Shown: positions 336 through 51,710 of the stretch, piece after piece
Layout of the letters: every line of letters starts with the position of its first letter
Position numbering within the stretch: position 1 is the stretch's first letter
From: Vitrella brassicaformis CCMP3155
Taxonomy: Eukaryota; Protista; Chromerida
Assembly: GCA_001179505.1 (NCBI GenBank)
Contig: CDMY01000452.1
Location: 1 to 64,000, forward strand
Direction of reading: 5' to 3'
DNA: 64,000 nucleotides
Made by a program: the position numbers and the translations under genes
Notes under the pieces: generated by a model
What the model saw: the letters and a program-made list of their open reading frames with translations, nothing else
What the model was told of the DNA's origin: nothing
The model's database searches: none

Positions 336-3200
336 ATTTGGCGGCTCTCACAGACGCCAATCGGCCAGACGACATCACCAAAGACAGAGCACTCACAGGG
401 GCAGCACAGTGAGAGACAGAGACACACGACACGAACGCAGCCGTCAGTCAGACAGCCAGACACTCAACCACACACCAGAGTCACAAGCTTCGCCCCTCCC
501 GCTGTCTGTCAGCCCAAAGACACCCATGGCTGAGTGCACCGAGAGAGAGAGACGCCTTCTGTCCTCCCGAACGACACAATACATCAGCACGACCCGATGG
601 CCTACCTGTCTGTCTGTCTGTGTGCGATCGCTGACCAAATGCCCCCCTCCCACCCTCCCTCGCTAGATGGACTGTACAGATGTGTGTGTGTGTGTGTGTG
701 TGATAGAGACCCCAACACACAAGCGGTCTGACCACTGCAGACGGACATGACTGCATCCTCCCCTCTCCCCAGACAGTTAGTCCACCACCCACCCACAATC
801 ACTCACGAGTGTCCCCCACACCCAATGCGGCAGACAGACAGACGGACAGACAGATAGACAGACGGACATGACGACCGCTCAGCCATTCCCACAGGCGGCC
901 GGCTGTCTGCCTTCGCCCCCTCTCACACACACCAATCGGCCAGTCAGGCGGATCGCATCAACGGCCCCACGAAAGCATCGCACAGACTGCCTGGGCCGCT
1001 CGCACATTCGCGAGACAGAGAGAGCCAACCAGCCACACAGAAATCAATCACCACACCCCCTCCCCTCTCTGTCAGTCAGACCTCCACGGAAACAGACACA
1101 CTGACCCACCCCGCCGCCACACACAAAGCTGAGCCGACTCGCGTGTCGGGCACATGTGTTCTCTGCCTGCGTGTCTGCACATAAGAAAAACACCAGCATG
1201 CAGCCCTCACGTTATCGCCTCACTGAACCGCACACACGCTACGCCGATATCGCCCCCCTCACTCTCTTTGTATGTCTGTGTGCATTTGCCCCCTCTCACA
1301 CACACCAATCGGTCAGACGACATTCACCACAGAGGGCTGCAAGAGAGAGACCAAGAGAGACACACAACACACACAAGACACACGCAGCTGTCGGTCAGTC
1401 AGATGGCCAAAGACCCACACACACAGAGAGAGAGGGACATCCGAGAGGCACACACAACGCATTCAGGCAAACACAGCGGCCGTCATCACCGCACCCCCTC
1501 CCCTCTCTCTGTCAGCGGCCCGCACAGACACACTGCCCCGCTCGCCCCCGGCCATTTCGTTTATGTCACGTCTGCACACACACTGACAGACAGCGAGACC
1601 ACACGAAACATAACGTCGTCCCTGCACATAAAAAAAGCAGCGTCCATCTCACTCTGTGGGTGGGGGTGGGGGGGTGTAAGTGAATTAGGCGCACAACAGA
1701 CACATCATGAGGCTCTCCCTTCCCCCTCTCCCGCTGACGCTCAGAGTCTAATAACCTCACAGAAATCAGCGTCACATACTGCGTTGGGATTATAATCGCA
1801 GTCACTATCGTCCAAGCATTGGACACAACGGTTGTCGAGTACTGTGTCTTGCTGCTTACACCGGGGCTGGAAAGATTCAAAGCAGTCCTCATCTTCAAAG
1901 CAGCTAACATACCGCAGTACGCATTTTGCTGTGGCATATCGCCCGGTGCCGCCCTCGTTGAATTCAACCATGATGTCGACATGGTACGTGTCAAACGCCC
2001 TACGTGGCACCACCACAGTCGTAATTGTTTCCCCATTAATGCTGACGGATCCCGTTGTCAATGGTGATCCAGTAGGGATGTCCTGCATTGAGTCCACTCA
2101 TCCACACGGCCGTACACACACCAGGTGCGCTGTGCTTACCACTCGGACCTCAGTCACGGGGGAGGGACTCGTCTCACCCACGACACCACCGAGGAATTCA
2201 GCCACTGCGATTACACCGGGAGCAGCATTCGCAGTACCGTCGGGCAGCGACTGAATGACCCCGATTTGAGACTGACACGACACACGAGTGCACACCACCC
2301 GCCCCCCGTGTGTGTCCAATGATGGACGGCCTTGATGGGTTCAGTGCCGTTGAGTGCGCACCTGGCCCCGGCCTTCGATGATGGTCGGTATGCCATTGGT
2401 TTCACATTTGTCCTCTTCGTCTTCAAACTGTGCCTTGGAACACACACATCTGCAGGCAAACAGACAGGACAGTGTCATGCAGCCACGGGTGTCAAAAGGT
2501 CATGGGCGTGTGAGCGTACACGACGTTTCCCGGGTGCAATCGCCTCTTCTCGGCCCCGGCCGCGGTGTCATTGCCGCTGGTCAAGGTGGGCGCTGTGTTG
2601 GGGCGGAGGAGGCCGGCACCACTCGCGGCACAGCGGCACCAGCCACGGGGGAAAGGCTGACAACACACATAGACGGCCAGAGAGCACACCAGACAGACAG
2701 ACAGACAGACAGGTGTAAGAGTGGTGTGGTGTGTGAGGGCAGTGCCCACCTGCCAGTGAGACCACGAGCCACATGACGGCAGGGGATCCGGACAGCACAG
2801 ACGACCGCATCACTGAGGCCTCCTTGGTCAGTGGGTGGGAGGAGGGAGGGCGACTGAAGGCGGCAAGAGAGAACACAACAAGGACCGCTTCGCCGACGGA
2901 CACAGGCAAAGGGATTTGCCAGTGGCCGTTAACGTTGGAATGACCGGCACATTGTTTCGGCGCGGCCAGGTTGACGGAGCTCTTCTGGCCTCCTGATGGG
3001 GCGTTTCTTTGCCCTTCGTCTGTTGACAAAGTGCTCTCCTCCTTTGAGTCTTCTGCCCGCCCCCCTTCCCCCCCGGCGGCTGTCCTTTGAAGCCTTCAGC
3101 AGCCCCCGCCGCCGCGGCCCTGCTGCTCGTCGTCACACCGCCCCGGTGAGCTCTCACACACGTCTGGCCGAACATGGCCACAGCACATCGAGCACACTGC
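336..3200 (-). repeat. Dispersed cassette copy A (secreted Cys-rich gene plus conserved flanks)
   Basis: Reverse complement aligns by eye to about 17590-20240 and 40135-42040 across upstream flank, introns and about 1.2 kb of downstream flank. Boundaries approximate. Confidence 0.85.
1741..2810 (-). pseudogene. Cassette gene copy A: 5-exon secreted acidic Cys-rich protein, frameshifted in exon 2
   Basis: Exons 2810-2750, 2656-2520, 2449-2362, 2271-2140, 2082-1741 with GT-AG. Signal-like MRSSVLSGSPAVMWLVVSLA; C-terminal CFEDEDC..C..CLDDSDC..C..C. Exon 2 is 137 nt vs 139 nt in B and C, giving an early TGA. Confidence 0.75.
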
Positions 3201-3676
3201 GTGTGTCCCTCAGCAACACACACGCTGCCGTGTCTCTAGAGCTCTCTCCCTCTCTCTTGTCAGTGGTTGCTGTGTGAGGACTACACAAAGGCACATCGGT
3301 GGCCGCCTACTTCATTGCGACACGACTGCGCTGTCAGTGAGGGCAGATCGACGCGATGGTGTTCGCGAAGCTCTCCCTATCTGCCGGCCCTGGCTCACAG
3401 CTGATGAAGGCATTCCATTAAATACTCCAAGACACAGACAGTCACACCGGAGCACCTCCCAGCCTCCCAGCTGGACCCACACACCACCGCACAGCCTGCG
3501 CATTCCGCGCATGGCCGTCAATGGTCTGTCTGCCCGGCCCCCCACAGACGAACGTACGACTATACACCCCTGCCGACATCTCTCCCTCTCCATGCAATGA
3601 GAACAGCCCCACGTCACAAACACGATTACACCCAACACGCGCACACGCGATTCATCTGTGTGTCTGCGTCGGCCAG

Positions 3677-17195: not shown

Positions 17196-17589
17196 TCCAT
17201 CCACGAGCCGATGGTGCTGGTGGAGACGGCGAGAGTGACGAAGGCGGCATCTGCTGGCTGCGAGACGTCAAGCACGCCTCAATCAATCGCATGTGGCTGG
17301 ACGCCTCAGGGCATCGGACCTTGACAGTGCTGCCCTGCTGGTGCTGCTGCTGATAATGCTGAGGGGCTGGCCGTGGTGGCTGGGTCGGGGCGGCACATGA
17401 GGGCGGGCGAGACGACGACAGAGAGGGCCATAGTGATTGACTGCTGGGTCAGAGTCGGTACGAGTACCGGTTTGCTGGACGAGTGGTGTTTCGGTCAGCG
17501 GCTGCTCATTCGCTGGGGCCGGCTGCTCCTGTCTGTTGCTGAGGGGAAGAGGATGGCCTCCTTGCAGAGAACACACAGCAACGGTCAAG

Positions 17590-20240
17590 GGACACACACA
17601 GCTGTGTCATCGATGTGAGTGGCCCTTATCGGCCAGACGTGTGTGAGACTCACCGGTCCGGTGTGATGACGAGCAGCAGGGCCGCGACGGCGGGAGCCAA
17701 CAGAGACAAACGCACCGTGAGCTGCTGGGAGTCTGCTGGGGGCTTCAAAGGACAGCAGGGGGAGGGGCAGGGGACTCAAAGGAGGTGAGCACTTTGTCGA
17801 CAGACAAAAGGAAAAGAAACCCCGATCCTGCAGGAGGCCAGAAACTCCGTCAACCTGGCAGCGCCGAAACAATGTGCCATCAACGGCCACTGGCAAGCCC
17901 GGTTTTGGGTTTTCGCTCGTTTTGCGCCTGTGTGTGGCCGTCGGCGAAGCGGTCCTTGTTGTGTTCTCTCTTGTCGGCTTCAGTCGCCCTCCCCGCTCCC
18001 ACTCACTGACCAAGGAGGCCTCAGTGATACGGTTGTCTGTGCTGTCCGGATCCCCTGCCGTCCTGTGGCTCGTGGTCTTACTGGCAGGTGGGCACCGCCC
18101 TCACACACCACGCCACTCTGACACCTCTCTGTCTGTCTGTCTCTCTGCTCTGCTGGCCGTCTGTGTGTGTGTGTGGTGTGTGTTGTCAGCCTTTCCCTCG
18201 TGGCTGGTGCAGCTGTGTGCCGCGAGCGGTGCCGGCCTCCTCCGCCCCAACACAGCGCCCACCTTGACCAGCGGCAATGACACCGCGGCCGGGGCCGAGA
18301 AGAGGCGATTGCACCCGCCAGGCGCCGAGTACGCTCACACACACGGCCGGCCAGCCGTGGTCTCTTGACACACGTGGCCGCCTGACATTGTCCTGTTTGT
18401 TTGTCTGCAGGTGTGTGTGTTCTGCGGAACAGTTTAACCAGGGCCAATGTGACCCCAACACCATACCGATCATCGTCACCGGCCGCGGCGAGGTGCGCAC
18501 CCAACGACACTGAGCCCATCGAGGCGATGCATCATTGGACACACACGGGAGGGCCTGTAGTGTGCACTCGTGTGTCGTGTCAGTTTCGAATCGGGGCCAT
18601 TTCTATTCAACCCACGAGTCCTGGCCTTGCTTTCGGTGTAGTCGCAGTGGCCTCCATCGGCGGTGACCCCGTGGAGGAGATGGATGACAGAGTGGATGAC
18701 GTCGAAGTGGTAAGCAAAGCGCACCTTCTGTGTGTAGGGCCGTGGATGACCCGACTCAATGTAGAAGGAGTTGCCTGACGGAGTATTGGGTCAGGGATCC
18801 GTCGGCTACATAACAACTATCGAAGTCCTTGAGTTTGAGGTTGACACGTATTTTGTCGACATCATGGTCACATTCATCGAGGGCGGCACCACGCGAGTCG
18901 AAATAGCAGAGGATTGCGCTTTGCGGGTTGTTGAATGCCTGGATGATGGTGACTGCACTGAGGGAAACATAGGTTTGCGGGTATGTGACGACAATAACCT
19001 ATGTTTCCCTAACCCTGTCCCGCCTTAGACTGTGAGCGTCAGATGAGAGGGACAGGGAGAAATTCATGATGTGTCTGTCGTGTGCCTACTAATTTACTTA
19101 CACACCACCCACACCCACAGAGTGAGATGGACGCTGCTTTTTTTATATGCAGGGACGACGTTGTGTTTCGTGTCGTCTCGCTGTCTGTCGGTGTGTGTGC
19201 AGACGTGACATACACAGAATGGCCGTGGGCGGGCGGGGCAGTGTGTCTGTGCGTTTCGCTGACAGAGAGAGGGAGGGGGTGCGGTGATGACGACTGTTGA
19301 GTCGGCCTGAATGCGACGATGTGTGCCTCTCGGATGTCTCTCTCTCTCCTTTGTGTGTGTGGGTGTTTTGGCCATCTGACTGACTGACTGACTGCTGTGT
19401 GGGTGTTGTGTGTCTCTCTGTGCTGCCTCCGTGAATGCTCTGTCTGTGGTGATGTCTGACCGATTGTGTGTGTGAGATCCGCCAAATGCACACACAGACA
19501 CAGAGGGAGGGGGGCGATATCGGCGTGGCGTGTGCGGTTCAGTGAGGCCATCAAATGAGGGCTGCATGCTGGTGTTTTTCTAATGTGCAGACACACAGGC
19601 AGAGAACAAATGTGCCCGACACGCGAGAGGGCTCAGGTGTGTGTGAGGGTGCGGCGGCGGGGTGGGTCAGTGTGTGTGTTTCCACGGAGGACTGACTGAC
19701 AGAGAGGGGAGGGGGTGTGGTTGATTTCTGTGTGGCTGGCTCGCTCTCCCTCTGTCTCGCAAATGTGCGAGCGGCCCAGGGAGTGTGTGCGATGCCCTCG
19801 TGGGGCCGTTGATGCGACCCGCCTGACTGGCCGATTGGTGTGTGTGAGGGGGGGCAAAGGCAGACAGCCGGCCGCCTGTGGGAACGGCTGAGCGGTCGTC
19901 ATGTCTGTCCGCCTGTCTGTCTGTCCGTCTGTCTGTCGGTCCGTCTGTCTGTCTGTCGCATTGGGTGTGGGGGACACTCGTGAGTGATTGTGGGTGGGTG
20001 GTGGGCTGACTGTCTGGGGAGAGGGGAGGATGCAGCCATGTCCGTCTGCAGTGGTCAGACAGGTGTGTTGGGGTCTATTATACCCCCCCCCACACACAGC
20101 CAGCCGTGCAATGCACAGACACACACATCTGTACAGTCCATCTGACGAGGAAGGGTGGGAGGGGGGCATTTGGTCAGCGATGGCAGACAGACAGACAGAC
20201 AGACAGGTAGGCCGTTAGGTCGTGCGGGAGGACAGAAGGC
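17590..20240 (+). repeat. Dispersed cassette copy B
   Basis: Collinear similarity to copies A and C; longer upstream similarity shared with A. Boundaries approximate. Confidence 0.85.
18027..19028 (+). pseudogene. Cassette gene copy B: frame intact but start codon lost (ATA)
   Basis: Exons 18027-18087, 18190-18328, 18411-18492, 18584-18709, 18765-19028 join in phase without stops; ends ECLDDGDC..C..CFPNPVPP*. Both ATGs present in A and C are ATA and CTG here. Confidence 0.7.
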
Positions 20241-29340: not shown

Positions 29341-29504
29341 GACTCACTCAAAGCAGATCTCCCTCGGGGTCTCTCTGCACCCAAGATGCGACACCGAATT
29401 AGTTGATCTGGCAGCACCGAATTCGCCCTGCCTCTCTGGAGCAGTTTCACGGAAGAAAGAATCGTGCGAGCTGTTTCGTGAACGTCATTTCGTGGAGAGC
29501 GAAG

Positions 29505-30626
29505 ATGGAGAAGATGCCGTCGCCCAGCCACATGAACGGCATGAACGGCGTGCCGACGGAAAAGGACAAAGCTGTCAGGCACCACCCCCCCCCGCCAGCC
29601 TTCGACCTGCTGCTGGGCGTCCTGTGCGTGGCGGGCATCTACGTGTCATACAGCATCTTCAGCGTCTTCCAGGAGAAGATCTACACCATCAGGGACGCTC
29701 ACTCGGGACACAAGTTCAAGTACGGCGTCTTCCTCGTCTCCTGCATCGCCTTCTGCGCCTTCATCGTGGGCGCCAGCGGGCTGCTCATCGAGAAGAGGCT
29801 CAACTTGGCACAGATCCGGCGCAAGATCAACCAGGAGACCGTCACGAACTTCGCGCTGATCTCGCTGACGTATGTGGGGGCGATGCTGTCGAGCAACTAC
29901 GCGCTGCAGCATGTCAACTACCCGACTCAGGTGCTGGTCAAGAGTGCCAAGATGGTGCCGGTGGTGGTGGGCGGCTTTCTGCTCTTCCGCAAGACCTACC
30001 CTTGGTATGACTACCTCAGCGTCTTCCTCGTGACGACGTCGCTCATCTGCTTCAACCTCTTCAAGGAGGGCGCCAAGAAGCACGCCGTCTCGACCTTCAT
30101 GGGCGTGGCGCTGTGCTTTGTGTCGCTCCTGTGCGACGGGCTGACGGGGCCGCGGCAAGACCACCTGATGAAGAAGTACCACGTGACGAAGTTCGAGCAC
30201 ATGACCTTCACCAACCTGTTTGCCCTCGTCTGGACGGCCCTCTTCATGTTTGTCCTCGAGGGCGTGGCGCCCGTCACTTTCTGCATCAACAACCCCTCGG
30301 CAGTGTGGGCCGTCTTGCTGTGCGCATCCTGCTCTGCGCTCGGGCAGATCTTCATCTTCTTGAGTCTGACGTCCTTCGGGGCTCTCTATCTGTCGCTCAT
30401 GACGACCACCCGGAAGTTTTTCACCATCCTGCTGTCGGTGGTGCTCTACGGCCACCACCTTAACGCTATCCAGTGGACCAGCGTGTTCGTCATCTTTGCC
30501 GGCATATTCCTGCAGACCTACTGCAAGAATGGCGACAATAACAAGCGGACAAAGCAACACGGCAAGGAGGCGGAAATGAGTGGCAAGATCACCGCAGCAG
30601 AGGAGAAAGAGGGCAAGAACAGCTAG
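29505..30626 (+). CDS. UAA-family nucleotide-sugar transporter (SLC35B1/HUT1-like), intronless
   Basis: About 10 hydrophobic segments; ALQHVNYPTQVLVKSAKMVPV, DGLTGPRQD, TTRKFFTILLSV motifs. Confidence 0.9.
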   Translation: MEKMPSPSHMNGMNGVPTEKDKAVRHHPPPPAFDLLLGVLCVAGIYVSYSIFSVFQEKIYTIRDAHSGHKFKYGVFLVSCIAFCAFIVGASGLLIEKRLNLAQIRRKINQETVTNFALISLTYVGAMLSSNYALQHVNYPTQVLVKSAKMVPVVVGGFLLFRKTYPWYDYLSVFLVTTSLICFNLFKEGAKKHAVSTFMGVALCFVSLLCDGLTGPRQDHLMKKYHVTKFEHMTFTNLFALVWTALFMFVLEGVAPVTFCINNPSAVWAVLLCASCSALGQIFIFLSLTSFGALYLSLMTTTRKFFTILLSVVLYGHHLNAIQWTSVFVIFAGIFLQTYCKNGDNNKRTKQHGKEAEMSGKITAAEEKEGKNS

Positions 30627-30976: not shown

Positions 30977-33900
30977 TCAGTTGGCGGCTTTCGCCTGTGC
31001 AGCCAACTCTAACAGCGACCCACCGCCCGCCCCCGAGGCAGCCCGAATGAGCCGCCCCTCGGGCACGGTGACCGACGGCATGGCGCCGTGGACAATCAGC
31101 ACCAACAGGGGCGGACGGCTGCCCTTCGCTACACCCTTGCCGCCCTTCTGCACACACACACACACACACACAGATGGTGGGGTGGTTGCTGTCTTTGTGT
31201 ATCTGACCTTGCCAGTGGGCGGCAGTGGCTGGTTCGGCGAGGGCATCTGCACAAACGACGTCAGGAAGTCCACCATGAGCTTGGGGCCGCCACTGAGGCT
31301 CACACCTGCACACAACCACCGCACACACACAAATGGCGCATATCACAGCGGACAAGACGCGAGACGTTAATTCTCTCTTCTTATGCTGACTCGGTGCAGG
31401 TGGCTGTGCGACGGGCGCTGCTACGAAGGGCATGGCCGACGGGCCCCCACTGCCGCCCACAGGCTTGCCAAAGCGGCTCAGGAAGTCCACCAAGGCAGCC
31501 ACTACATCCTGGTGATCACACCCCCCACCAGCATCCCAGCACACCATTGGCGGACATGATGGATGGCCGGGATGTCTCTCTCGTTTACTTGGCTGTCTTT
31601 GGGATCTTGAGGCAGGTTGAAGTCGACAGCAGCTATCTCTACAGTGGTGGACCGGGCACTCACCGGGCCGTAACGAGGCTCACGACAACTGCACATCATG
31701 ACGGCACAACACAACGCGCAGACGTTTTGTTGTTTGGTGTCTCTTCAAGGGTCAGATTCGTTCGTCCATTGACCCACCTGTTAGGGTCGGTGAAGTCCTG
31801 CAGGTGTGGATTCAACTTGACATGTGCCTGTAGACTGACCGCCACGCTCTGCGGCTCCCCCGCCAGCCGCATACCTCCCGCGATCTCCTCTACCAATCCA
31901 TCGCCGGAGCTAAACGCTAAGGTACCGCCGCCACCGCGACACCCGCCACTATCCCTACTCGCGCCACCCGCACCCTCCTCCCCCATCGCCTCCTCTGGCT
32001 GCTCCTTCATCCCACTGGTCGCCGCCATCGGCCCCTCTGCCCCCAACCTGCTTTGGATGAGTGACATCAGCAGGCTGCCCGCTGTGCTGTCGTCCTCCGC
32101 TCCCTCTCGCTCGTCCGTCGGCGGCTCCTCGTTGGGCTCGGCACTGTCGTCCTCCTGCTCCGGGCCGCCCTCCGCTGTGGCGGTGCTGTCGGCGTGTGGG
32201 TCGGGGTGCGATGGTGTGCTTCGCCAGGCGGCCTGTATGTTGGTGACGGTGTTGTCGGTGGATGTGCGGAGGGCCGCGAGGGTGTGTGCGAGGGTGTGGA
32301 GGAGGCCGGGGGTGGTGGGCTGGCCCCAGAAGGTGTCCCTGGCGCCACTGGTGTCGGTGCCGATGTTGAGGAGACACAAATTCTGACCCTCTGAAGGCAG
32401 CAACAGGAGAGAGAGGGAAGGATGAGGGGCGGGGTGTGTGGAATGCATGGGTGGCGGCTCACTTGCGATGACGTCCTCTACCACTCCTGCGATGTCACCG
32501 AGTAGCTGCTCGGGGAGAAAACGCAACGGAGAATGAGAGCAGAAGGGCCGTGATTGTGTGTTGGTTTCACCGACCTGCTTGAGTTCGTAGGAGGTGTCAG
32601 CCTGCTGTGACGGTGCCGTGCCGTCGACAGACTTGGGGTCCGACCAGTCGACCATCAGAATGTGGTTCGGCCGCCCCAGCCGATTCGACACTGCAAACCA
32701 CACATAACAACAGCAACAACAACAACATACACAATCCCTTCTCCTCATTCCCTCCCGTCCAACCCCTTACCGAGCAGCCTGTGGAAGCCCAGCAAGGCCT
32801 CATAGGTCCCCTTGGCATCCTTGCCCTTCTCCTCCTCTGCTTGCGGCTTGGCCGGCTGCGGCGCACACGATGGCGCGGGGCCAAACATGGACGCCAGCAG
32901 CGACATGCCTGACGCAGACGCCGCGCCAGGCATGGCAGCGATGGCCTTGAGGTCTATGGCGGGGGCGGGCGGGGGATGGGCCGGGACGGGCTTGGCATCC
33001 TTGGTGATTGTGTCGGCCACATCCAAAGGGAAGGTCAGCCGGACGGCGAATGGGTCGGGGGCTGCCGGCTTGGTGGTGGGGGCTGTCTTGGTATCGTCGT
33101 TACTGGCCTTCTCCTGCTCGCTCGTGGGCAGGTCGATTTTTACAGGGCGTGTTGATGTGTCCGGTGCCTCGCCCTTCTCGCCATGGTCATCCTCCTTTTC
33201 CCCCTTGGCCGCTTCCCCGCTCCTGACCAGTCTGCAGACGACACGCGGCCGGGGGCCGGCCTGGTGCTGCTGGTAGTAGGGGGACTGCTCGAGCAGTGTC
33301 TGGATCTTGCGCATGAGAGCGTCGGTGTGCTGCAGCTCACGCAGATGCTGCTGCTCTATCTCGGCCAAGCCGACCTTCCCCGCCTGCAAATCAGCAGTAG
33401 CAAAGATGTGTGTGGATGGATGGATGGATGCCTCGCTGTCCCCGCGCTCTCTCACGTGCATCTGCTGCCGCAGTGTGTCCTTCTGCGTGCCGTGCTGCTG
33501 CTTGTCCTTTGCGCACCGCCTCAGCTCATCCTCTATCGCCCTAGCCCCCTCCTGCGTGGCTCTCCGCTGCTTGTCAAGCGCCAAATTCTCCATGACCAGC
33601 CGGTTGCCCTCCTCACGGAGCGCATCCAGCCGGCCGGTCTTGCCATCCTTCTCGCCCCTGGCGGTCGCCTGCCGGTCCCTCCGCCCTCCCAGTGCCGTGC
33701 GAGTGTCGGCCGCCTTGGTCCTGACCTGCTCCTTGACCTCATCTCGGGCCTGGCGCAGGTCGCCCACGGCCTCCTTGGCCCGCTCGAGTAGCTCCTCGAC
33801 GGCGGCTTTCTCCTCGGTGAGCTGCCGCTGCTGCTCCTCCTTGGCTGTGATCTGGCTCTCGAAGCGCCTAACGGCGGCGTGGAGGGAATCCCGGCCGCCC

Positions 33901-33989
33901 TCGTGCCCAGCAGGCTGCCTGATACGGGCACCTGCACCACGACCACTGCCAGCGTCGCCGGCGGCGTCAAAGGGCTTGCGATGCCGCAT
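30977..33989 (-). CDS. Hypothetical coiled-coil protein, multi-exon
   Basis: MRHRKPF start, long E/K/Q/R heptad region, in-phase junction ..RLLG / VSNRLGRPNHILMVDW; last exon ends ELAAQAKAAN*. No family recognised. Confidence 0.6.
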
Positions 33990-34077
33990 ATCTCCGGATC
34001 GAGGGATTGCGGGGGACAAAAGATTGCCAGGACGAGCTCGCTCTGCGTATGTAAACGAATGCGTCAGCCGATCAATT

Positions 34078-35211
34078 ATGAGCGGTCAGCCGCCAGCTCA
34101 CAGCGCATTTGCGTCCATATCGCCTCCTTACTTCATGGGCGTCGCCGAAGTCGCCACAAGGATCGAGAAGCTGCCGCTGCAACAAAAGTGCTTCCTGGCC
34201 TGGCTGGCCGTGGTCTTCTTGGTCTGTTTCTGCCTCCTTGTGGTGCAGCCGGAGCCGCAGACCCTCGTCGTGACCTCACCAGAGTCTTTGCGGCGGAAGA
34301 AGGCCCTTGAGGGAACGCCCTACTCGCCAGTGGAGTGCTGCCCATCCATCGCTGGGCTGGAGAACGTTTCCTCTGCACTGCAGCCGGAACAGATGGTGGA
34401 CTCGAACAAGTTCTACACGGTGACCATCTTCACTATCGGCGCTGACGTGGAGATGCTGCGGACAATGACGCGCCGAATCGGGGCCTGCGACAAGATCGAC
34501 CGCATCCTGATCCTCTGGAACACAGCTGCCACGCCCCCGGAGCCATCCTTCCTGGCTGCCGGCCAGTTCGCAGACCGCATCGTGGTGGTTCAGGAGCTGC
34601 GGGACTCGCTGCAGAACAGGTTCTTGCTCGTGCCGGCACACGCGAGGACAGAGGGGATTGTGTCCATCGACGACGACATGACCGGCATCTCGTGTGAGGA
34701 GCTGGATGGGCTGTTTGACAGGTGGAGAGACGCGCAGCAGTGTGCGGTTGTGGGGCCGACGGTGAGGACCATTGAGGGGAGGGGGAGGGCCGCCATGGGT
34801 GCTGGTGCCACCAACCCTTACCTGGTCAGTGTCGGCCCCCAGCCGTATCGGCTGCTCGAGTACGTGCAGAGGGACTCCCGGCCGCCTCACCTGATCCTCA
34901 CCAATGTGGCCATTTACAGCAGGTGCATGGCTGTCGTCTACAGCCACGTGCTGCCCCGATTTCTGATCGGCTATGTGGACACTCTGATGAACTGTGAGGA
35001 CATTCTCTTCAACTTCATGCTGCACTCGTTCACGAGTGGGGTGCGGGTCAAGGCCAGCAGCCACCCTGACAGGCTGCACGCGCCGCGTGAGCAGCGGCAC
35101 AACAGGCAGAGGCAGTCCATCAGCCTGAAGGACAAGTATGCACACCAGAAAAAAAGGGATGCGTGTGTGATGTACTTCACGCGGGTGCTCGGAGATATAA
35201 GGCAGGGCTAG
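34078..35211 (+). CDS. GT64 exostosin C-terminal-like (EXTL2-like) glycosyltransferase, intronless
   Basis: Type II TM near the N-terminus; IDRILILWN, SLQNRF, VSIDDD (DxD), NCEDILFNF motifs. Confidence 0.88.
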   Translation: MSGQPPAHSAFASISPPYFMGVAEVATRIEKLPLQQKCFLAWLAVVFLVCFCLLVVQPEPQTLVVTSPESLRRKKALEGTPYSPVECCPSIAGLENVSSALQPEQMVDSNKFYTVTIFTIGADVEMLRTMTRRIGACDKIDRILILWNTAATPPEPSFLAAGQFADRIVVVQELRDSLQNRFLLVPAHARTEGIVSIDDDMTGISCEELDGLFDRWRDAQQCAVVGPTVRTIEGRGRAAMGAGATNPYLVSVGPQPYRLLEYVQRDSRPPHLILTNVAIYSRCMAVVYSHVLPRFLIGYVDTLMNCEDILFNFMLHSFTSGVRVKASSHPDRLHAPREQRHNRQRQSISLKDKYAHQKKRDACVMYFTRVLGDIRQG

Positions 35212-39954: not shown

Positions 39955-40263
39955 TGACCGCGTCTCTCCAACGGCCAATCACACGTATTAAAAAATAAAA
40001 GCCCGCACACAAGAGATGGACACATGGCTCATCCGCTCTACGACGGCTGTCTACGGCGTGTCGTCGCCTGATGGAATGTGCTCCCGACTTCTCATGCGCA
40101 TTTTAGTCATTGCCGTTTGTGGCGAGTATTATTCTCAACGGCCGCAGACCCCTCTTCTCTTCGCTGTCCGTCGGTGAAGCGGTCCCTGGCAGTGTTTTGT
40201 TCTCTCTTGTCGGCTTCAGTCTCCCTCGCCCCTCCCACTCAGCTGACCAAGGAGGCCTCAGTG

Positions 40264-41300
40264 ATGCGGTCGTTTGTGCTGTCCCCCGCCGTCATGTGGC
40301 TCGTCGTCTCACTGGCAGGTGGGCACCGCCCGCACACACACCACTCTGACATTTCTCTGTCTGTCTGTCTGGCTGTCTGGTGTGCTCTCTGGCCGTCTGT
40401 GTGTGTGGTCAGCCTTTCCCTCGTGGCTGGTGCCGCTGTGTGCCGCGAGCGGTGCCGGCCTCCTCCGCCCCAACACAGCGCCCACCTTGATCAGCGCCAA
40501 TGACACCACGGCCGGGGCCGAGAAGAGGCGATTGCACCCGCCAGACGTCGAGTACGCTCTCACGCACACGGCCGGCCGTGACCTCTTGACACACGTGGCT
40601 GCATGACACTGTCCTGTTTGTTTGCCTGCAGATGTGTGTTCCAAGGATCAGTTTATTCCGGAAACGGGGGACTGTGGAGGCAATCCCATACCGACCATCG
40701 TCATCAACCGGGGCCAGGTGCGCACCTGACGACACTGAGCCCATCGAGGCGATGCATCATTGGACACACACGGGGGGCGTGTGGTGTGCACTCGTGTGTC
40801 GTGTCAGATTCGAATCGGGGTCATTGAGGAGCTGCCCGAGGGTCCTTTCAATGCTGACGGTGTAGTCGCAGTGGCCTCCATTGGCGGTGATCCCGTGGAT
40901 CAGACGGGTGACGATGTGATGAGCGTCTCAGTGGTAAGCACAGCGCACATTCTGTGTCTATGGCCGTGTGGATGACCCGACTCAATGCAGGAGGTTGGCG
41001 ATCAAGATTGGTTATTACCGTCGTCGATGGGATTACGACTATCGAAGTCGAGAGTTTTGATGAGACGTACCATGTCAACATCGTGGTCACGTTCCACGAG
41101 GGCGCGAGCCGCCCTAACGGCTTCTGAATACGTATTTCGGGCTGTTGAATGCTTGGAAGATGAGGACTGCTGTGATGAGGGAGACCCGGAAGAGTGCTTA
41201 GAAGAGTGTAACGAGAACTTCAGGTGTGAATCTTTTGCGGAGCCCGGAAAAAGGCGACGGGTGTGACAACAACTTCAGGTGTGAACTGTGTCCGCCTTAG
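40264..41300 (+). pseudogene. Cassette gene copy C: frameshifts in exons 3 and 5
   Basis: Exons 40264-40318, 40413-40551, 40632-40717 (86 nt, out of phase), 40808-40933, 40991-41300. The conserved ITTIEVESFDETYHVNIVVTFHEG and VECLEDEDC segments lie in different frames. Confidence 0.75.
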
Positions 41301-41311
41301 ACTGTGAGCGT

Positions 41312-41611
41312 NNNNNNNNNNNNNNNNNNNNNNNNNNNNNNNNNNNNNNNNNNNNNNNNNNNNNNNNNNNNNNNNNNNNNNNNNNNNNNNNNNNNNNNNN
41401 NNNNNNNNNNNNNNNNNNNNNNNNNNNNNNNNNNNNNNNNNNNNNNNNNNNNNNNNNNNNNNNNNNNNNNNNNNNNNNNNNNNNNNNNNNNNNNNNNNNN
41501 NNNNNNNNNNNNNNNNNNNNNNNNNNNNNNNNNNNNNNNNNNNNNNNNNNNNNNNNNNNNNNNNNNNNNNNNNNNNNNNNNNNNNNNNNNNNNNNNNNNN
41601 NNNNNNNNNNN
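41312..41611. other. Assembly gap (300 N)
   Basis: Run of N within the repetitive cassette downstream flank. Confidence 1.
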
Positions 41612-42477
41612 TGGCTCTCTCTCTGTCTCGCGAATGTGCGAGCGGCCCAGGCGGTGTGTGCGATGCTCTCGTGGGGCCGTTGATGCGATCCGCCTGACTG
41701 GCCGATTGGTGTGTGTGAGAGGGGGCAAAGGCGGACAGCCGGCCGCCTGTGGGAACGGCTGAGCGGTCGTCATGTCTGTCTGTCTGTCTGTCGCATTGGG
41801 TGTGGGGGACACTCGTGAGTGATTGTGGGTGGGCGGTGGGCTGACTGACTGGGGAGGGGGGGCGATGCAGCCATGTCCGCCTGCAGTGGTCTGGTCGGTT
41901 GTGTGTTGGGGGCATCTGCACACACACACCCGCTCCCGCACACACCAGACGGCCGTGCAAATGCACCCACACACTCAAAAACAAGTGTACAGTCCATCTA
42001 GCGAGAAAAGGAGGGCTGGTTTTCCTTGTCGTGCGGGAATGTCTGCTTATCTCTGTCTGTGTATTGGGTGGGTGTATGGTCATTGTACGTGTTGGCAAAG
42101 CAGGTGTGTGGGAAGTGGTCAGCTCGTGACGTAAGACCGATTCCTTCAAGACGTTGACCCGCGCACGGCATTTCCGAACCTACAGCGGGTCAACACGAGA
42201 GCAGCCGGTCAACACACACACAGACTTAGTCGTTCGTTGATCTGAACCAGTTGATCTCAGTAGTGCATCCAGATCATCCGAGAAAGACATCCGTCATCCA
42301 ATCAGGCTCCCCTCTTCTCGCTACCCGCTTACTGCCGTTTGTGGCGCGGGAAGAAAATCCTTTGCATTTGGTGTTTCACCTGTGGCTCGTCGTCTCCTTG
42401 CGCTTGTGTCCAGTCAGTCATACGTATAGATATATACATCGACTTAAATATACGCTGTCTGCCTGTCGATCACATTT

Positions 42478-43702: not shown

Positions 43703-45896
43703 ATGGGCGTGACACACACAGCCCTCCGCGTGTCACGGAAGAAACCACGCGCCTCTTGCCGCACCCTGCAGGACACACACCGAAAGAAAGACGACGGGAC
43801 TCATAGATTTCCGTTGAAAGCAAGTCATCCAGTCCGTCTTGCCTACCTGAGCTGCGCTGGTGAGCTTCGCGACGATGAAAAAGGGAGAACGATCGACTAC
43901 AAGCCGAGCTCGCATTTCTTGGCGCCAGATTTCGAGAGGTAAGTTCTCTGAGGTCCGTGTGGACAGATGCGCACGTGTAACACTTGGACAACACAACACT
44001 CGTTCGCTGTGTTTGTCTTCAGCCTTCGTGGTGTTTGTACCCGCCTCGAGATTCAGGACGAAGTGGTCAGGAAGGTGACTGTTTGTCGAGCCCTTGAAAG
44101 CTGAGAAGGTAGCCCATGTGATGGATAGATGGGCTCATGTGAAAACAGTGTGACACACCATTTGTGTGTGTGATGGTTGGTTTATGCCTCCCTCCCTCCC
44201 TCCCTCCAGCAGGAACTTGAGCAGGAATTCGAAGGAAGGATGCATCGGTTCGCAGCCCTCTCACTGCGGCACACAGCCATGGCGGCAAAGGTACACACAC
44301 ATCGGCCTGGATGGATGGATGGATCAATGAGTCACGCCTTACTCGGGATCTGTTATCTGCAGGTGTCGCCGGCGCGTTTCGTGTGCGTGGCCAAGGCGGG
44401 GCTGCAGGCCACAGGGAGCTCCTACACCGGTACACACAGCACCAAACACAGCAAAGGAGCACAGCAAGGCCAAGTAGGCAGTCGTATATATGTGTGTGTA
44501 AGTAGGTGTCAGTGTGTCGTGTCGGATGTTTGCGACTGCCGGGGCGCGGATGAAGGCGGAGGACTGGTGCGGCAAGGTGGGCAGCTGACACACAGCACAT
44601 GAGGGAATGGCACCTTCGCATACACATGATAACACACGTGTGCGTGTCTAGATCTTCGATGCGATTGACTTCAATAAGGTACACACGGATGGCATGCATT
44701 AAGGTTGGTTATCATTCGCACGTCGACACGTCTGCCTTTCATTTGCCCGTCCATCCTCATTGATTCACCCGTCCTTCCTAAGAACGGATACCTGGACAAG
44801 GACGAGGTGAGTGAGCCATTTCAGCTTGACGCATGTGCGTGCCCCACTACACTCGCCGTGTGTGTGTGTGTGTTGCGTGTCTGTCTGTCATCAATCGCCA
44901 GGTCAAGAAGATAGTGCTGTGTTTCGGGGAGAACCACGAGCAGGCCGAACTGAGATGGGCCAAGTGAGTAGGGCGAGCAAGCAACGACGCCTAACACACA
45001 CACACACACACACGCACCCACCCACCACATGCAGGCTGCTGGAGCATGTCGACACCAACAAGGACAGCAAGATATCCCGGTGAGTACGGACACATATTAG
45101 CATATGCGTGGCGCCCGATCACTGTCTGTCTGTCTCTTTCCTGACGGGGGTGTGTGTAGTTCCGAGTACGTGTCGTACTGGAAGAACCAAACAAGTGACA
45201 AAGTCGAAAAGGACGGTACACAAGCACGCAGGCAATCACGTGGACAGACTGGCTGGCACCTACATGTCCGTGTGTGCGTGTGTGGGTGCAGGTGGCTACA
45301 GCAAGGACTACGAGGAGTATCTCGCCAACTATATCGGTACGCACAAGCATACCCACTGCCTGCCTCCATTGGACCCTGCATGTCTTGTGTTGTGTTGGGC
45401 TCTTGTTGGGCTCTGCGTGTGTGTGTGTGTGGTTTGGCGCAGACCTGCTCAAAATCAAGGTGAGTCCGAGCTGACACGCTTCCCTCATCACGACACCGTG
45501 ACGCCGTCAACTTGTCTGTATTAGCTGCGTATGAACACACACACATATACCATTTTTACCAATGGTTGGTTGGTTGGCTGCTTGCATGTGGCTGGTTGGT
45601 TGGTTGGCTGGATAGAGCCAGCAGCACGAGCAGGAACTGGCAGACGAGAGAAGACAAGATACCGACACTGACACGGCAGCTGTACGCAAGCTACATCACA
45701 CCACACCACACACACACAGCGGACAGACAGACAGACAGACAGACAGACATCCCTGTGCGTGTAATGTACTAATGATAGCCTATTTGCATGAGCGTGCTTC
45801 GATACTTACACCGCCACCCTGCAATCACGTGCTCTCTTGTCCCGTGTCTGTGTGTCTGTGTGTGTGCAGGCCAAGAGCGTTATCGGCGGCAAGTGA
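43703..45896 (+). CDS. EF-hand calcium-binding protein, many short exons
   Basis: Splicing builds two canonical 12-residue loops, DFNK/NGYLDKDE and DTNKDSKISR/SE. Start codon uncertain; last exon AKSVIGGK*. Confidence 0.65.
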
Positions 45897-46467
45897 TGAT
45901 GGACAGACCGGCACACACGGACGGCCGGGAGGGTGGATGCCCACAGACTGCCCGCAGTAGTGGATGGATGGATGGATGGACGCATGCGCATTTTGTCTGT
46001 CTGCGTGGGTATATCACTAACATATACAGTGTGTATGCAATCAATCGATCGATCATGCAGTCTGTTTGTCGGTATGTATGGTGTGGTATGGGTGGGTATG
46101 ACGCATGACTGACTATAGAGGTTGGTTGGCTAGACGGCCGTGTGTGTGCAGACTGACACTTCTTCTGTGTGTAACTGGGCGGGCCGGGGAGTGGGTGGGC
46201 GAGCGGTCGGGGGCCCATGCATGGATGGATGGATGGACGCGCGAAGGACAACCTAGCGCAGGCTGTCTAGTCTCGTTTTGTCCGTCGTTTCGATCGAACG
46301 AGAGACCCATCATGGTCCTTCACGTACCCTGCTTATGGACATGGACCAACTCAAGGCTGTGTTCGACGCACTAAAGCTACACAACACAAGAAAAAGCTAG
46401 CTAGCAAAAGCAGCAGCTCGTTGCGCACTCGAGTGGGGCTGCCGACACCTGACACAAGACACACACA

Positions 46468-48202
46468 TTACACACACACGGGGGCTGTGGGCCCTGTGTG
46501 TGCCGGCTGCCAGCCAGTGGATTGCATTGCGTACGTGTGTTCGGGGCAGAGTTTGTCTTCGGTCGGCATCGGGGCCATCCACTTCTCAAAACACTCCTGA
46601 CACACAACCTGACACACACACAGACGACACGCAGAAACGTATTGCTCTTTCTCTCTGTCCCATGCAACCGTGTAAGCCTTCTGACTCACTTTATGTCCGC
46701 AGGGCAGCAGGATGATGTCTGGCGGCTTCTCTAAGCACAGCTGGCACTTGCTCTCTCCCAGCCAAACACCGCCACCCACACCACTGCTGCCACTGGACGA
46801 TGGCGCAGCACATGGGCCATTTGCCTGTGCCGAGCTGCTGCTGCTACTAGCACTGGCAGCTGCTGCTGCTGGTGGTGGTAACGCGCTGGCGTCATCCACG
46901 GTGAGAGAGAAGGGCATGCAGGGGACGGTGGCGTGGAAGGGGACAGCTGCTGCTGCAGACGAGGATGGTGCGGATGGTTGGCTGGGCTGCTGCAGCTGGA
47001 TCTGTCGCTCGATGGCGGCCTGGTGCACTAGGGCGAGGTCGTCGAGCAAGCGACGCACCGACGGCAAATCGAGAGACGACACGCCTTCAGCACTGAGACG
47101 ACTGCACCACACACAGCAGCAGACATGTCCACAGCTGCTTCCGGGGTGTGTGTGTGGTGACCTGTGTGGTGGCTGTGCCGATGACAGCTGCTGCTTGAGC
47201 ACTAGGTTCTCCCGTCTCAGCGGCGCCTCCGCCTCGCGCAGCCGACGCAGCTCGCCGTCTCTCTCCTGATCTACACGCGCTGACCTGCACACACACATCA
47301 ACACACACATGTCATAAGATCAGCAGCATCTGTCGGAGGATGGCCTCCTTCTCTCTGTCTGCTTGGCTGGCTGGCTGACCTGATTCGTTCTTCCCTCAGT
47401 CGTTGCCTCAGCTGATCCCTCTCGCGCGTCACGTCGGCCAGGGCCCTCTCAACCGCCACACGCATCTCTGTCTGCTGCTCGATGGCCGTCCGGTGCTGCG
47501 CCCTCAGTTCCAAAATGGCCGACCGGTGCTCGCCACGCAGTCGGTCCAGCTCCTCTCTGTGCTGCTTGGTGATGGTGTCCATGTGTGTCTTGGCGGCCTT
47601 GTCGGCCTCCTCCCGCACCAACTGGCTCACTCGACGCACACGGTCGTCGGCACTGCACACACAGACACCAGACAGACAGACAGACAGACAGGGGGGGGTT
47701 CTTCATTGTGTGTGTGTGGCGAGTTGGGTTTACGTCTTTTGTGTCTGTTTGATTTGTTTGTCTTTGTCTTTGAGGATGTCCTCGAGAGTGCTGCGCTGCG
47801 CGTCGGCGGCCTTCCTCTCCTTCTCAGCCATCTCCCGCGACGCAGCCAACTCAACGGTCAACCTACACACCGACGCACACATCCACACAACACACATAAG
47901 AGATGTCCACGTGTGTATCCGTGCGTGTGACGTGATGGACATGGTGTGACTTGAGCACCCACCCGTTGATATCGTCTCTGGCTCGTCTGATGCTCTCGTT
48001 GAACTGGTCCTTCTGCTTTTTGTTGGCGTCAAGCGCCCTCCTGAGCTGCTCCTTCAGCTGCTCAAGCTGCGTCGTACGGGCATCGTGGGCCTCTCCAGCT
48101 GTGCTGCCTGACGGCTTGTGCTGCGCTCGTGTCGGCGATGATGACTTGGCGGACCGGCAGGAGTCACCCGTCGGGCTGGCCGAGCGACCCACACTGTGAC
48201 AC

Positions 48203-48242
<40 letters not shown>

Positions 48243-50746
48243 GCCATCTCTCTCTAGGTGCATCTGTCTGTGACTCTCTGACATGAGTGTGAAGACGGGA
48301 AGGAAGCTGTGTTTGTTGGCTGCCAGAAAGGGGTCAATGGGTGGCCGCCCCGGCGCCTTCTTGAACATGCCCTCGCGCCGCTCACGCACGGCCGCCTTGT
48401 GCGCATCCGACGTGTCTGCAGAGCGCTCCCACATGGCCAGCAACTCGGCGTCCGACAGGTCCTCGGCGGCCCCGCTCTCATCACCACCACCACCAGCGGG
48501 ACTGCCGGCACTCAGGGGCTCGTTCAGCCATGAGGCGGATGGGGCGGCCAGGAGGTCGGATATGACGCGAGAGACCGCCGCTTGGAAGCCGTTGGCGGCC
48601 ACGCGGATCTCCTAAGTATCCACACACACACACACAGACAGACAGACAGAGAGAGGTGCCGATGAGGCCTGCAAGATTCTTACACTGTTCTCTCTGCTAA
48701 AGTCGGCAGCATTGAGGGATATCAGCTTCAAATCCAAACACAGAGACGGCCAGGTCTCGTACACACCAAACTCTACACGCGACTGCACCACAAACACACA
48801 TGAGTGTGTGTGTGTGTGTGTATGGCTATCAATCAGCACACACCTGTATGTGTGTGAGGTCCGGTGTGCGCGGGAAGCTGTCGTGGAATGCGGGCAGCGG
48901 GCACTTGACGCGAAAAGGGCGTGAGCAGGGCGACGCCAGCAGCCGATCCACCACCTTGCGCATCCACCACCTTGCGCATCAGCTCCCCGTGGGGCACAAC
49001 CGCACTGCAGCCACATCAGGTCAGTCAGTGGCAAGGCTGGCACCGTACCCATGTGTGTGCCTTCACCCACTCACCTCGCCATGCTGCACGCCGTGTATTC
49101 GTTTCGTCTGGATGAGTTCCAGAGGTCGATGAGCTCGCCCATGGACAGGTCGCCGCGCGTATCGACGGCATCCTCGTCGACATTGAGCACGGTCTTGCTG
49201 ACCCTATCAGCGTCTGGACCAAGCAGCTCCTCGTCTACCGGGTCAATGAGTGGCCGATGCCGGCGGACTAGGCGGATGGCGACGGCAGACAGCTCCGTGG
49301 CAGCCACGGAAACCTCCTGTGCGACCACGAGAGGAGAGGAGAGGAGAGGAGAGGGGAGGGGGGTGTGGGGCGGACATCATGGCGTGTGGTCCGTACCGAG
49401 CCCGGCCTGGTGAACCTGCTCGCATTTCTGGCCATCTCGATCACATAAATGGCCCACTGGATCCAGTGGTTGCAGGACTGATACACACACGTAAGGACAC
49501 GACAGCACGTGTCCGTCGGGTGGGTCTGGTGCCTCTCTCTTTCTCACCAGCTTCAGGAGCTCAGGGACCACCTTGTTTTCAAGCTCCTGGATGGAGGAGG
49601 GAGACCTCCCACTGCTTGAGCGTGGTAGATCGATGAGATAAGTGACAGCCTCGCTACAGATCCGGGCGTAGTCCGGGTGGGGACATGGCACGCGGAATGG
49701 GCGAGAGGAAGGGTGACGCCGCAGTGCGGCAGTGGCGGCCAGCATGTCATCCTTCAGCCGCTTCTCATCTGTTGACATTGCAGCTGCCGGCGACCTCGGC
49801 GTACTGCACACATGGACAGCAGCAGACGACATTATCGTGACGCTCGACTTGCCGCCTGTTGCCCTCCGCTCACCTGTTGGTGTCTGTGGGGCCCCTGGTA
49901 GTGGCGGCTCCGAGTTCCTTCTGCATTAGCTGCTGGCCTTTGCTGAGCTCACTGACGAAGTTCGTGTGCCACTGGGGCAGCCACTCGACACGCACATGCC
50001 GCAGCGGACCCAACGCAAACACCGCCGACGGATCACTGCACACACACAGAGCACATGACACCCGTACTACCCAGTGGCTGAGATGCCCATTCTGTTGGGT
50101 GACCTTTGCAGCGCTGTGCGGTGGTCCATGAAGAACTTCTTGACGGCCCGCAGGTAGGTCTCCCGCTCCTGGGCCCCATCGCACTCACTCGACTCGACAC
50201 AGCCGACACCCTCGCCCTCTCCCTGCCCTCTGTGCTGCTGCAGGAATGCCCGCACGACGGCCAGCGTCTCACTGGAGGGCTCTTTGTCGCCCTCTCTACC
50301 CGACGTGACGGTGGCGATGTCGGGGAAGGCCTCATGGATGGACTCGACTGAAACGGTGGGTGCGGCTGTGATGGGCGGGGTTGAAGGCTGAGGAGATCTC
50401 TGTTTGGGCTTGGGAGTGGCCGGCTTCGACTTGGGCGGCGACTTGGTCTTGTCCTTGTCGGTGAAGATGCCACGGAAGATGCTGCTGGGGACAGCAGGTG
50501 GGGAGTGAGAAGCGCTGGGGAAAGCCATGACCAACGGAGATGCATTGGGTTGAGATGATTCATTTGCTTCCTTCCTCTGTGCTCTTTTCCTTACTTTTCG
50601 CTCCTGAACCAGTCGAGCACAGAGAGAGAGCCCTGGTCCTGACCCTCTGGGTGTTGCTGTTGCTGCCCATCGTTCCCTTCTTCAGCAGAGGCCGGCTTGT
50701 TGCGCGAATCGTCACTCGTGGTGCTTGATCTTGGCTGATTTTCCAT
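46468..50746 (-). CDS. Bromodomain-like repeats + coiled coil + C-terminal RING-HC; frameshifted as assembled
   Basis: LRRHPSSRPFRVP..PDY and RNASRFTRPGS; LLASPCSRPFRVK..PDLTHIQSRVEFGVY..DLKLISLNAADF; RING CQLCLEKPPDIILLPCGHK/VVCQECF..CP. A 16-bp duplication at 48946-48977 breaks the frame. Confidence 0.65.
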
Positions 50747-50874
50747 ACCTGGGGTGTCCTTTGATAGAAGGAAGTGTCTGCCTGCAGAGATAATGAGTCG
50801 GGGCTTCGTAGCTCGCCTCCCCTCCGCCTTTTCAAGCTCGCACGAGGCGGAGGAGTTACCGGAAACGATCCGCG

Positions 50875-51674
50875 ATGCTTGTAGGTCTGCTGATATCTGC
50901 GCTTTCATCTTTCACTGCCATCCATCCGGCATCTTCGTCGGAGCTCTCTTGCCATCGACACGCAGTCACTGAGGCAAGCAGTCGCGCACACGTGATGAAT
51001 GGACACACAGCAGCAAACAGACAGACAGACACACAGGCAGGCAGCAACGCAGCAAAGGCAAGCCGCACATCTTGATCAATCCTCATCCGATGTCTGTCTG
51101 TCCGTCTGTCTGTCTGTATGTATGTGTGTCTGTGTTTTCTTTGTCTGCAGTTCCATCGTTTCATCCATCTCTCACCACTTCGTCGAAGGCCACTTCGGTC
51201 AACGCGAGAAGCCACAGACGATGTCCTTCATCCCGCAAGAAACACGGCCTTCCTTGCGCGACCAAGAATCCACCAAGTCGCCTCCCACCTCCTTCCCTCA
51301 TCACGGCGCGCAAGACGGCGGCAGAGCTCAACAAGGGAGCAGAGAAAGGCATGCTTGTGCCGCAACACGCGAAGGGACCCGGCTGCGTGTGAGGACGGGC
51401 AGGACAGGCGGCGGCTTACGCGCACGTCTGCTTCCAAGGGAGGGTCTGCTGCTGTCGCTGAGCCGCCTGCCGTCCCTCGTGAAGCCACTGGGGGCAAGAA
51501 GGACGTCAAGAGGGTGCTGATCGTGATGAGTGACACTGGTGGGGGGCACAAGGCGTCTGCCTTGGCGCTCAAGGACGCCTTGTGGGAGAACTACAATGAC
51601 AACGTCGATGTCAGAATCGGTACGTGTGTGGATGCGGGCAAGCGTGTGTGTGCACACAGGTCAGTAAATGTGTA

Positions 51675-51710
<36 letters not shown>

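Follow-up and report, generated by a model that had tools for sequence, protein, structure and literature searches.

Introduction

Exons that evolve faster than introns are rare, and they usually mark arms races such as those of venoms, immunity and reproduction. In the group II phospholipase A2 (PLA2) genes of snake venoms, the mature-protein exons diverge more than the introns and the untranslated regions (UTRs), and the ratio of nonsynonymous to synonymous divergence (dN/dS) is about 1 or above. The rif and stevor genes of Plasmodium have a conserved leader exon and intron together with a variable second exon. Conotoxin leaders are conserved even at silent sites. Conotoxin precursors are composed of a conserved signal, a pro-region and a variable mature part, and their conserved intron and 3' UTR serve as primer sites for the polymerase chain reaction (PMC6266589). 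In this study we analyzed a stretch of 64,000 nucleotides of Vitrella brassicaformis CCMP3155 (positions 1 to 64,000 of contig CDMY01000452.1, assembly GCA_001179505.1; hereafter the window), which holds three copies, A, B and C, of a five-exon gene whose last three exons have diverged several times more than the introns lying between them.

The Vitrella family shares with conotoxin precursors a conserved leader (mean DNA identity 92% for exon 1 and 95% for exon 2), a pro-region with a basic end and a variable mature part with a cysteine framework, and its exon 2 is also conserved at silent sites. However, there is no sequence relation to conotoxins and no Pfam conotoxin match, the mature part is beta-rich with about 180 residues instead of a peptide of 10-40 residues, the variable region is spread over three exons, and there are five copies instead of hundreds. 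Vitrella is a photosynthetic alveolate without a venom apparatus, and the likeness is of architecture only. The family thus appears to work like a conotoxin superfamily without being a member of one. With the snake-venom PLA2 genes it has in common that exons are faster than introns and that dN/dS is about 1, but the proteins are unrelated, the Vitrella family is far smaller, and for PLA2 both the fold and an enzymatic activity are known. Families of the rif and stevor type also combine a conserved signal-encoding first exon and intron with a hypervariable coding region and mosaic paralogues, and Vitrella is a relative of the Apicomplexa. In contrast to their tens to hundreds of copies, Vitrella has five loci lying among housekeeping genes, with no sequence similarity to these families and no transmembrane or glycosylphosphatidylinositol-type C-terminus in copies A, B and D. 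The closest analogues, conotoxin and PLA2 genes, are functional ones and not homologous.

Divergence of exons and introns

A search of the complete assembly (72.7 Mb, 1064 contigs) at the DNA, protein and profile levels gave exactly five copies of a transcription unit of about 2.6 kb. Copies A, B and C lie in the window, copy D on contig C314 and copy E at the end of contig C646. A preliminary description of the window had placed three gene bodies at 1741-2810, 18027-19028 and 40264-41300, and all of them are present there; it had also likened the pattern to that of variant-antigen, recognition or toxin families, and the five copies in the genome do not make up a large variant-antigen repertoire.

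Mean pairwise DNA identity among the five copies was 90% in the upstream region, 92% in exon 1, 86% in intron 1, 95% in exon 2 and 89% in each of introns 2, 3 and 4, but 63% in exon 3, 65% in exon 4 and 54% in exon 5. The 3' flank was 88-94% identical in A, B and D. Among A, B and C, DNA identity was 87-97% in exons 1-2, 70-73% in exon 3, 61-72% in exon 4 and 53-62% in exon 5, while intron 3 was 89% (A/B), 89% (A/C) and 96% (B/C) identical; at the amino-acid level, exon 4 was 38-57% and exon 5 36-48% identical. These values bear out the pattern estimated by eye beforehand (intron 3 about 89-94%, exon 4 protein 45-57%, exons 1-2 nearly invariant and exons 3-5 strongly diverged). Differing aligned sites made up 33-54% of exons 3-5 and 9-16% of introns plus upstream region, a difference significant in all ten pairs (Fisher p = 1e-14 to 1e-48), and in formal alignment exon divergence was 3-5 times that of introns and flanks. 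The change in identity takes place no more than about 20 nt away from the splice sites. Intron 4, with 57 nt in copy A, keeps 85-91% identity, while the sequence on either side of it falls to 13-55%, and introns 1-3 behave alike.

With the Nei-Gojobori method (NG86) on protein-guided codon alignments, exons 3-5 gave dN of 0.46-0.71, dS of 0.26-0.69 and dN/dS of 0.79-1.87, that is about 1 (0.8-1.9) and not well below it. Taking introns as the neutral proxy, divergence (K) was 0.09-0.19 in introns and 0.04-0.07 in the leader, and dN of exons 3-5 was about four times the intron divergence. The indels in exons 3-4 have 9, 6, 3, 6 and 3 nt, every one a multiple of three, compared with only 4 of 14 indels in introns and upstream region, and exons 3-5 contain no stop codons in A, B, D and E. 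Because the indels are in frame and stops are absent, the variable exons must have diverged while they were maintained as coding sequence. Fourfold sites in codons of conserved residues within the variable exons had a pooled K of about 0.19, near that of introns, so the excess divergence sits in the replaced codons, where it affects the whole codon. The transition/transversion ratio (Ts/Tv) was 0.74 in exons 3-5 and 1.26 elsewhere.

The opposite behavior is found in exon 2 (2520-2656 in A, 18190-18328 in B and 40413-40551 in C), which has a core of about 100 nt that is 94-100% identical in the five copies. It is more conserved than the introns, significantly so in seven of the ten pairs, and among B-E it shows zero third-position differences beside 4-9 differences at first or second positions. 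A structured RNA in exon 2 was considered and rejected, as predicted folding gave z = +0.6.

Gene structure and transcription

The exon/intron boundaries were determined from the five-way alignment, which shows four short introns at conserved GT..AG sites. The window as a whole is GC-rich eukaryotic DNA (57-62% GC) with GT-AG introns. Copy A lies on the minus strand, with a whole unit (promoter/5' UTR, five exons and long 3' UTR) at 587-3210, as given by the blastn extent against copy B, and a gene body at 1741-2810; it is annotated as CEM14040.1. Exon 1 (2750-2810, ATG at 2808-2810) encodes the first part of a signal-like leader and is joined to exon 2 across intron 1 (2657-2749, 93 nt) in the alignment and by the spliced joint 2656 to 2750. 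Exon 2 (2520-2656) encodes the end of the hydrophobic leader and an invariant pro-region ending in EKRR, and is followed by intron 2 (2450-2519, 70 nt). The variable part begins with exon 3 (2362-2449; joints 2449 to 2520 and 2271 to 2362), which has a CVCS...C motif with three cysteines. After intron 3 (2272-2361, 90 nt), the variable exon 4 (2140-2271) has no cysteine but carries a GV(V/I)AVA strand motif; it begins about 21 nt further upstream than had been proposed in the preliminary description, at a conserved GTGTCAG acceptor, although the exon itself was correctly recognized. Intron 4 (2083-2139, 57 nt) precedes exon 5 (1741-2082), which encodes a variable beta-rich part (ITT..., F-N-E-G-G-T) followed by a pair of cysteine modules with C(L/F)xDxDC, and ends with the stop codon TGA at 1741-1743.

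Copies B and C lie on the plus strand. The unit of copy B, whose annotation CEM14045.1 begins at an invented upstream start, is at 17588-20225 with its gene body at 18027-19028 (exons 18027-18087, 18190-18328, 18411-18492, 18584-18709 and 18765-19028). The unit of copy C (40165-42015) is split by an assembly gap at 41312-41611; its gene body is at 40264-41300, with exons at 40264-40318, 40413-40551, 40632-40717, 40808-40933 and 40991 to about 41300.

All four introns of copy A are skipped exactly, with GT..AG on the minus strand, in spliced contigs of two runs (X5 and X6), and because their contigs skip these introns, the two runs must hold complementary DNA. There was zero mismatch between exons 3-5 of copy A and the spliced contigs, one contig spans 1633-2081, and the 3' flank is covered by additional contigs as far as about position 960. 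Copy B is represented by a JGI transcript contig (L017) that matches the window at 100% identity, with the exon 1 side at 17891-18087, a 5' UTR of at least 136 nt and a 3' UTR of about 200 nt. Introns 1-3 are spliced in it at the predicted sites; intron 4 (18710-18764, 55 nt) is kept in this single JGI transcript contig found, and the frame is broken there. The five-exon structure proposed earlier for all three copies was thus right, with four of four introns in A and three of four in B seen spliced, and both copies are still transcribed and spliced. An exact-product look-up gave no transcript record for copy D.

Predicted protein

Copy D (CEM01970.1, UniRef100_A0A0G4EUJ1; 236 residues) is fully intact. 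Its N-terminus has Arg2 and then a hydrophobic stretch (residues 4-28) to about residue 28. The leader, which exon 1 and the first part of exon 2 encode, is nearly invariant among the copies, and a whole-genome search showed that the leader exon is not common to other Vitrella genes. The pro-region of copy D is Ala/Ser/Thr/Pro-rich, contains an N-D-T sequon and ends in EKRR-LHP, which does not vary among the five copies. The mature part of about 175-190 residues (exons 3-5) has a CVCS...C head, alternating hydrophobic strands (GVVAVA, ITT.., ..I.V.F.EGGT) and an end module C..C(L/F)xDxDC..C..C, and retention of the cysteine spacing, of the ITT and FxEGGT strand motifs and of C(L/F)xDxDC, as described earlier, is seen in the alignment. 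Copies B, C and D have a single C-terminal cysteine module, A has two, and E has about four in tandem. The mature part contains an even number of cysteines, with 12 in A and 8 each in B and D, which suggests disulfide bonding. Judged by eye, A, B and D end in short C-termini that are polar or proline-rich and have no hydrophobic tail. Together these features are consistent with a prepro-type protein of the secretory pathway, with putative secretion and putative processing at EKRR.

Pfam gave nothing above threshold for single exons, whole annotated proteins or the C-terminal repeat of copy E. The DX module (PF01666), a six-cysteine module of nematode proteins, matched the C-terminal module of copy B with 17.1 and 14.9 bits (E = 0.008-0.037), below the gathering threshold of 25 bits, and matched no other copy, so we did not place the family there. 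A profile search of solved structures gave none (best E = 1.1), and outside Vitrella there was no protein match in 1.84 billion representatives (profile search) or 5.8 billion proteins (word-indexed search). One repeat-protein match and one low-complexity match with E of about 6e-4 were taken as chance. Metagenome contigs contained no confirmed relative. The ESM Atlas gave no usable feature match, and its structure rows, all with template modeling (TM) score < 0.5 on a model with a predicted local distance difference test (pLDDT) value of 0.34, are meaningless. Copy D is named "FAD-binding PCMH-type domain-containing protein" in UniRef; we rejected this name, as no FAD-binding or other Pfam domain was detectable. 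No description of the family in Vitrella was found in the literature. The family, which had not been recognized in the preliminary description, therefore has no match in Pfam, PDB sequences or large protein databases outside Vitrella.

State of the copies and deposited models

Compared with the other four copies, copy A has a 2-bp (TG) deletion in exon 2 at about 2632/2633, which leads to a stop within exon 2, and no in-frame ATG rescues the mature frame. The contig layout listed no indel at this place and also listed no contig bridging it. In copy B the start position (18027-18029) reads ATA and not ATG, which is the same in the transcript contig; the rest of the frame is open, and no upstream in-frame ATG exists in the at least 136 nt of 5' UTR. 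In copy C, 2 bp are missing where exon 3 begins and the frame changes twice more within exon 5; it is probably a pseudogene or a poorly assembled copy. A 300-N assembly gap (41312-41611) lies directly after its exon 5, and its GC content is 50%; this low GC and the frameshifts may partly be due to poor assembly. These lesions had been overlooked in the preliminary description. As assembled, A, B and C look non-functional. Of the five copies, D is clearly intact, E is probably intact and the other three are probably dead, with A and B still being expressed.

Exon 5 of copy E carries an insertion of 741 bp (L015:7395-8135 on contig C646, minus strand) bounded by an 18-bp direct repeat, TCGACCAACAGATCTCAG. 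Immediately within its 5' end is a GTAAGG, and splicing to an acceptor CAACAG would restore the frame; with the GT predicted after L015 8136 and the AG before L015 7394, the insertion could be removed in frame as a fifth intron. Its last 135 nt recur at at least six other loci with 71-98% identity, and it may be a mobile or introner-like element. Downstream of it, at L015:7074-7388 on the minus strand, are the approximately four tandem cysteine modules (C-N-T-E-T-T-E-C-V-Q-C-L-T-D-A-D-C...), which are absent from the deposited protein and had only sub-threshold Squash and WAP matches in Pfam.

The deposited model of copy A (CEM14040.1) evades the frameshift by an exon-1 donor 15 nt upstream, while the spliced contigs use the conserved donor instead. 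The model of copy B (CEM14045.1) adds an invented upstream exon to open the frame (model region 17666-18087), the model of copy C reads through out-of-frame text, and that of copy E (CEM28200.1) ends inside the 741-bp insertion. Four of the five deposited models are thus forced around lesions and are unfit for use as they stand.

Origin of the exon divergence

The contrast itself is sound and statistically strong, and the preliminary description was largely right that coding evolution is accelerated and that the family is an orphan, while it overstated the cassette and variant-antigen aspects. We favor, with a probability of roughly 0.55, the explanation that this is a Vitrella-specific family of five loci under birth-and-death evolution, with toxin-gene-like organization and diversifying selection on the mature domain. 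Whole-gene duplication would yield copies of a prepro-type protein of the secretory pathway, built from a signal-like leader, a pro-region ending in the dibasic EKRR and a mature domain with cysteine modules, and these copies would have the same genealogy in introns as in exons. The mature exons would have been driven to change 3-5 times faster than introns, UTRs and promoter by selection on a surface for binding or antagonism, accompanied by some segmental exchange between copies, while the leader would be held constant. Birth-and-death turnover would account for the state of the family, in which D is intact, E probably intact and A, B and C carry recent disabling lesions.

Several points weigh against this explanation. 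Codon positions 1, 2 and 3 differ by 0.40, 0.40 and 0.37 in exons 3-5, and since third positions are as diverged as first and second ones, selection on amino acids alone is insufficient; the diversifying selection proposed earlier is thus in keeping with the rate contrast, the dN/dS and the in-frame indels, but not as the sole cause. The NG86 dS (0.26-0.69) exceeds the intron K, and a dN/dS of about 1 also fits relaxed constraint. Site-model tests would need more than five sequences, and in parts of exon 5 the divergence is too high for confident alignment. Three broken copies of five are odd beside strong ongoing selection. AlphaFold2 on copy D with a four-sequence alignment reached a mean pLDDT of 33.6 and gave no fold or functional clue. 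Finally, the leader could instead be a bipartite plastid-targeting signal, as it has ...SLAAFP..., with Phe near the possible cleavage site, and then an Ala/Ser/Thr/Pro-rich, net basic stretch. Plastid proteins of chromerids often have Phe at the cleavage site, although the rule is weaker in Vitrella (PMC6668581).

The divergence might also reflect age. The copies would be old paralogues whose exons show their true age under weak constraint, while gene conversion homogenized leader, introns, promoter and 3' UTR, with tracts that fail to cross the diverged exon blocks or are selected against in them. Exchange between copies is indeed indicated by the genealogy: informative sites give many mutually incompatible splits, and a permutation test of the pairwise homoplasy index (PHI) type gave p = 0.0005 for the whole alignment, but for the backbone alone it was not significant (p = 0.14-0.38). 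The upstream region groups ABC|DE, following chromosomal location, whereas the commonest split of the gene body is AD|BCE. Conversion would also fit exon 2, whose lack of third-position differences among B-E is as expected after a recent event, and the equal divergence at all codon positions together with Ts/Tv of 0.74 against 1.26 in the backbone looks like saturation. However, AD|BCE is the main split of the introns, where 9 of 31 informative sites show it, and likewise of exons 3-5, and we read this as introns and variable exons sharing one history with some exchange between copies, so that the difference would be one of rate and not of age. The conserved islands are very short (introns of 57-93 nt) and sharply bounded by splice sites; separate conversion tracts are unlikely to have kept intron 4 alike, because it has 57 nt and is flanked by stretches of 13-55% identity. 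Fourfold sites in conserved codons have diverged about as much as introns and not several-fold more, and selection for diversity would still be required to stop homogenization. We therefore consider old paralogues unlikely as the source of the contrast.

The synonymous excess, with all codon positions 3-4 fold above introns, would also be explained by region-targeted mutagenesis, in which error-prone repair or recombination preferentially hits the mature-domain exons and spares the leader; such focal hypermutation was reportedly once proposed for conopeptide genes. The higher conservation of exon 2 than of introns in seven of ten pairs, with no synonymous change among B-E, and the different Ts/Tv of the compartments also fit it. 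On the other side, we know of no targeted-mutagenesis mechanism in chromerids, the boundaries coincide with splice sites and, within exons, with conserved motifs of the protein, which speaks for selection acting on the product, and there is no deaminase-like transition bias, no unusual RNA structure predicted in exon 2 and no repeat or palindrome marking the variable blocks; focal hypermutation seems improbable. Equally improbable is the reading that this is a decaying orphan family of transcribed pseudogenes without current function, in which the divergence is the residue of past evolution. The lesions of A, B and C, each of which prevents translation of a leader-plus-mature protein, the insertion in exon 5 of copy E, the copy B transcript contig retaining intron 4 and the lack of relatives in any other organism would agree with decay. 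But neutral decay cannot push exon divergence above intron divergence, and it does not fit a leader more constrained than introns, in-frame indels throughout the variable exons, stop-free exons 3-5 in four copies or the intact 236 codons of copy D.

Under diversifying selection on the mature domain, the family would be a candidate mediator of interactions between Vitrella, a free-living or coral-associated chromerid alga, and other organisms. Its five copies, whose genealogy is known, are a small, tractable system for comparing selection, gene conversion and targeted mutation as the source of the leader/mature contrast. A quite doubtful but wider idea is that a locus-specific mutational or recombinational mechanism, and not selection alone, operates here as a venom-gene-like scheme in a protist, perhaps in several secreted families of Vitrella. 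In such a scheme the leader would be shielded down to its silent sites, and the mature exons joined to it would outpace their introns by far at all codon positions. If so, the proteins would be a diversifying arsenal for extracellular recognition or antagonism in a coral-associated relative of the Apicomplexa.

Flanking regions, remnants and neighboring genes

The copies share flanks of about 0.4 kb on the upstream and about 1.2 kb on the downstream side of the gene body, and these flanks lie partly within the transcript contigs of A and B. Because transcript contigs cover them, the shared flanks can be taken as promoter and UTRs of an ordinary duplicated gene. The unit borders have no terminal inverted repeats except (GTCT)n microsatellites, and a whole-genome search found the flank DNA to be low-copy, only at the five loci plus fragments. 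A cassette borne by a transposon or Helitron was therefore rejected: of the earlier proposal that the unit is copied as a cassette, the shared flanks and duplication as a whole gene stand, while the mobile element is unsupported. No Rfam family was found anywhere in the window.

Solo pieces of promoter/exon 1 and of 3' flank, without a gene body, are present on contig C646 (at 41-49 kb, and in the piece 44000-53000) and at C818:6593-8240. They look like leftovers of further, lost copies.

The genes between the copies in the window are unrelated housekeeping genes, namely a UAA-family nucleotide-sugar transporter (29403-30623), a GT64 glycosyltransferase (33307-35208) and an MGDG synthase (51118-52812). 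Microsatellites of (GTCT)n / (GACA)n occur within intron 1 and where the 3' flank ends (2683-2719, 18123-18148, 19905-19957 and 20183-20223), and this motif is very common genome-wide, with many short matches in the flank search.

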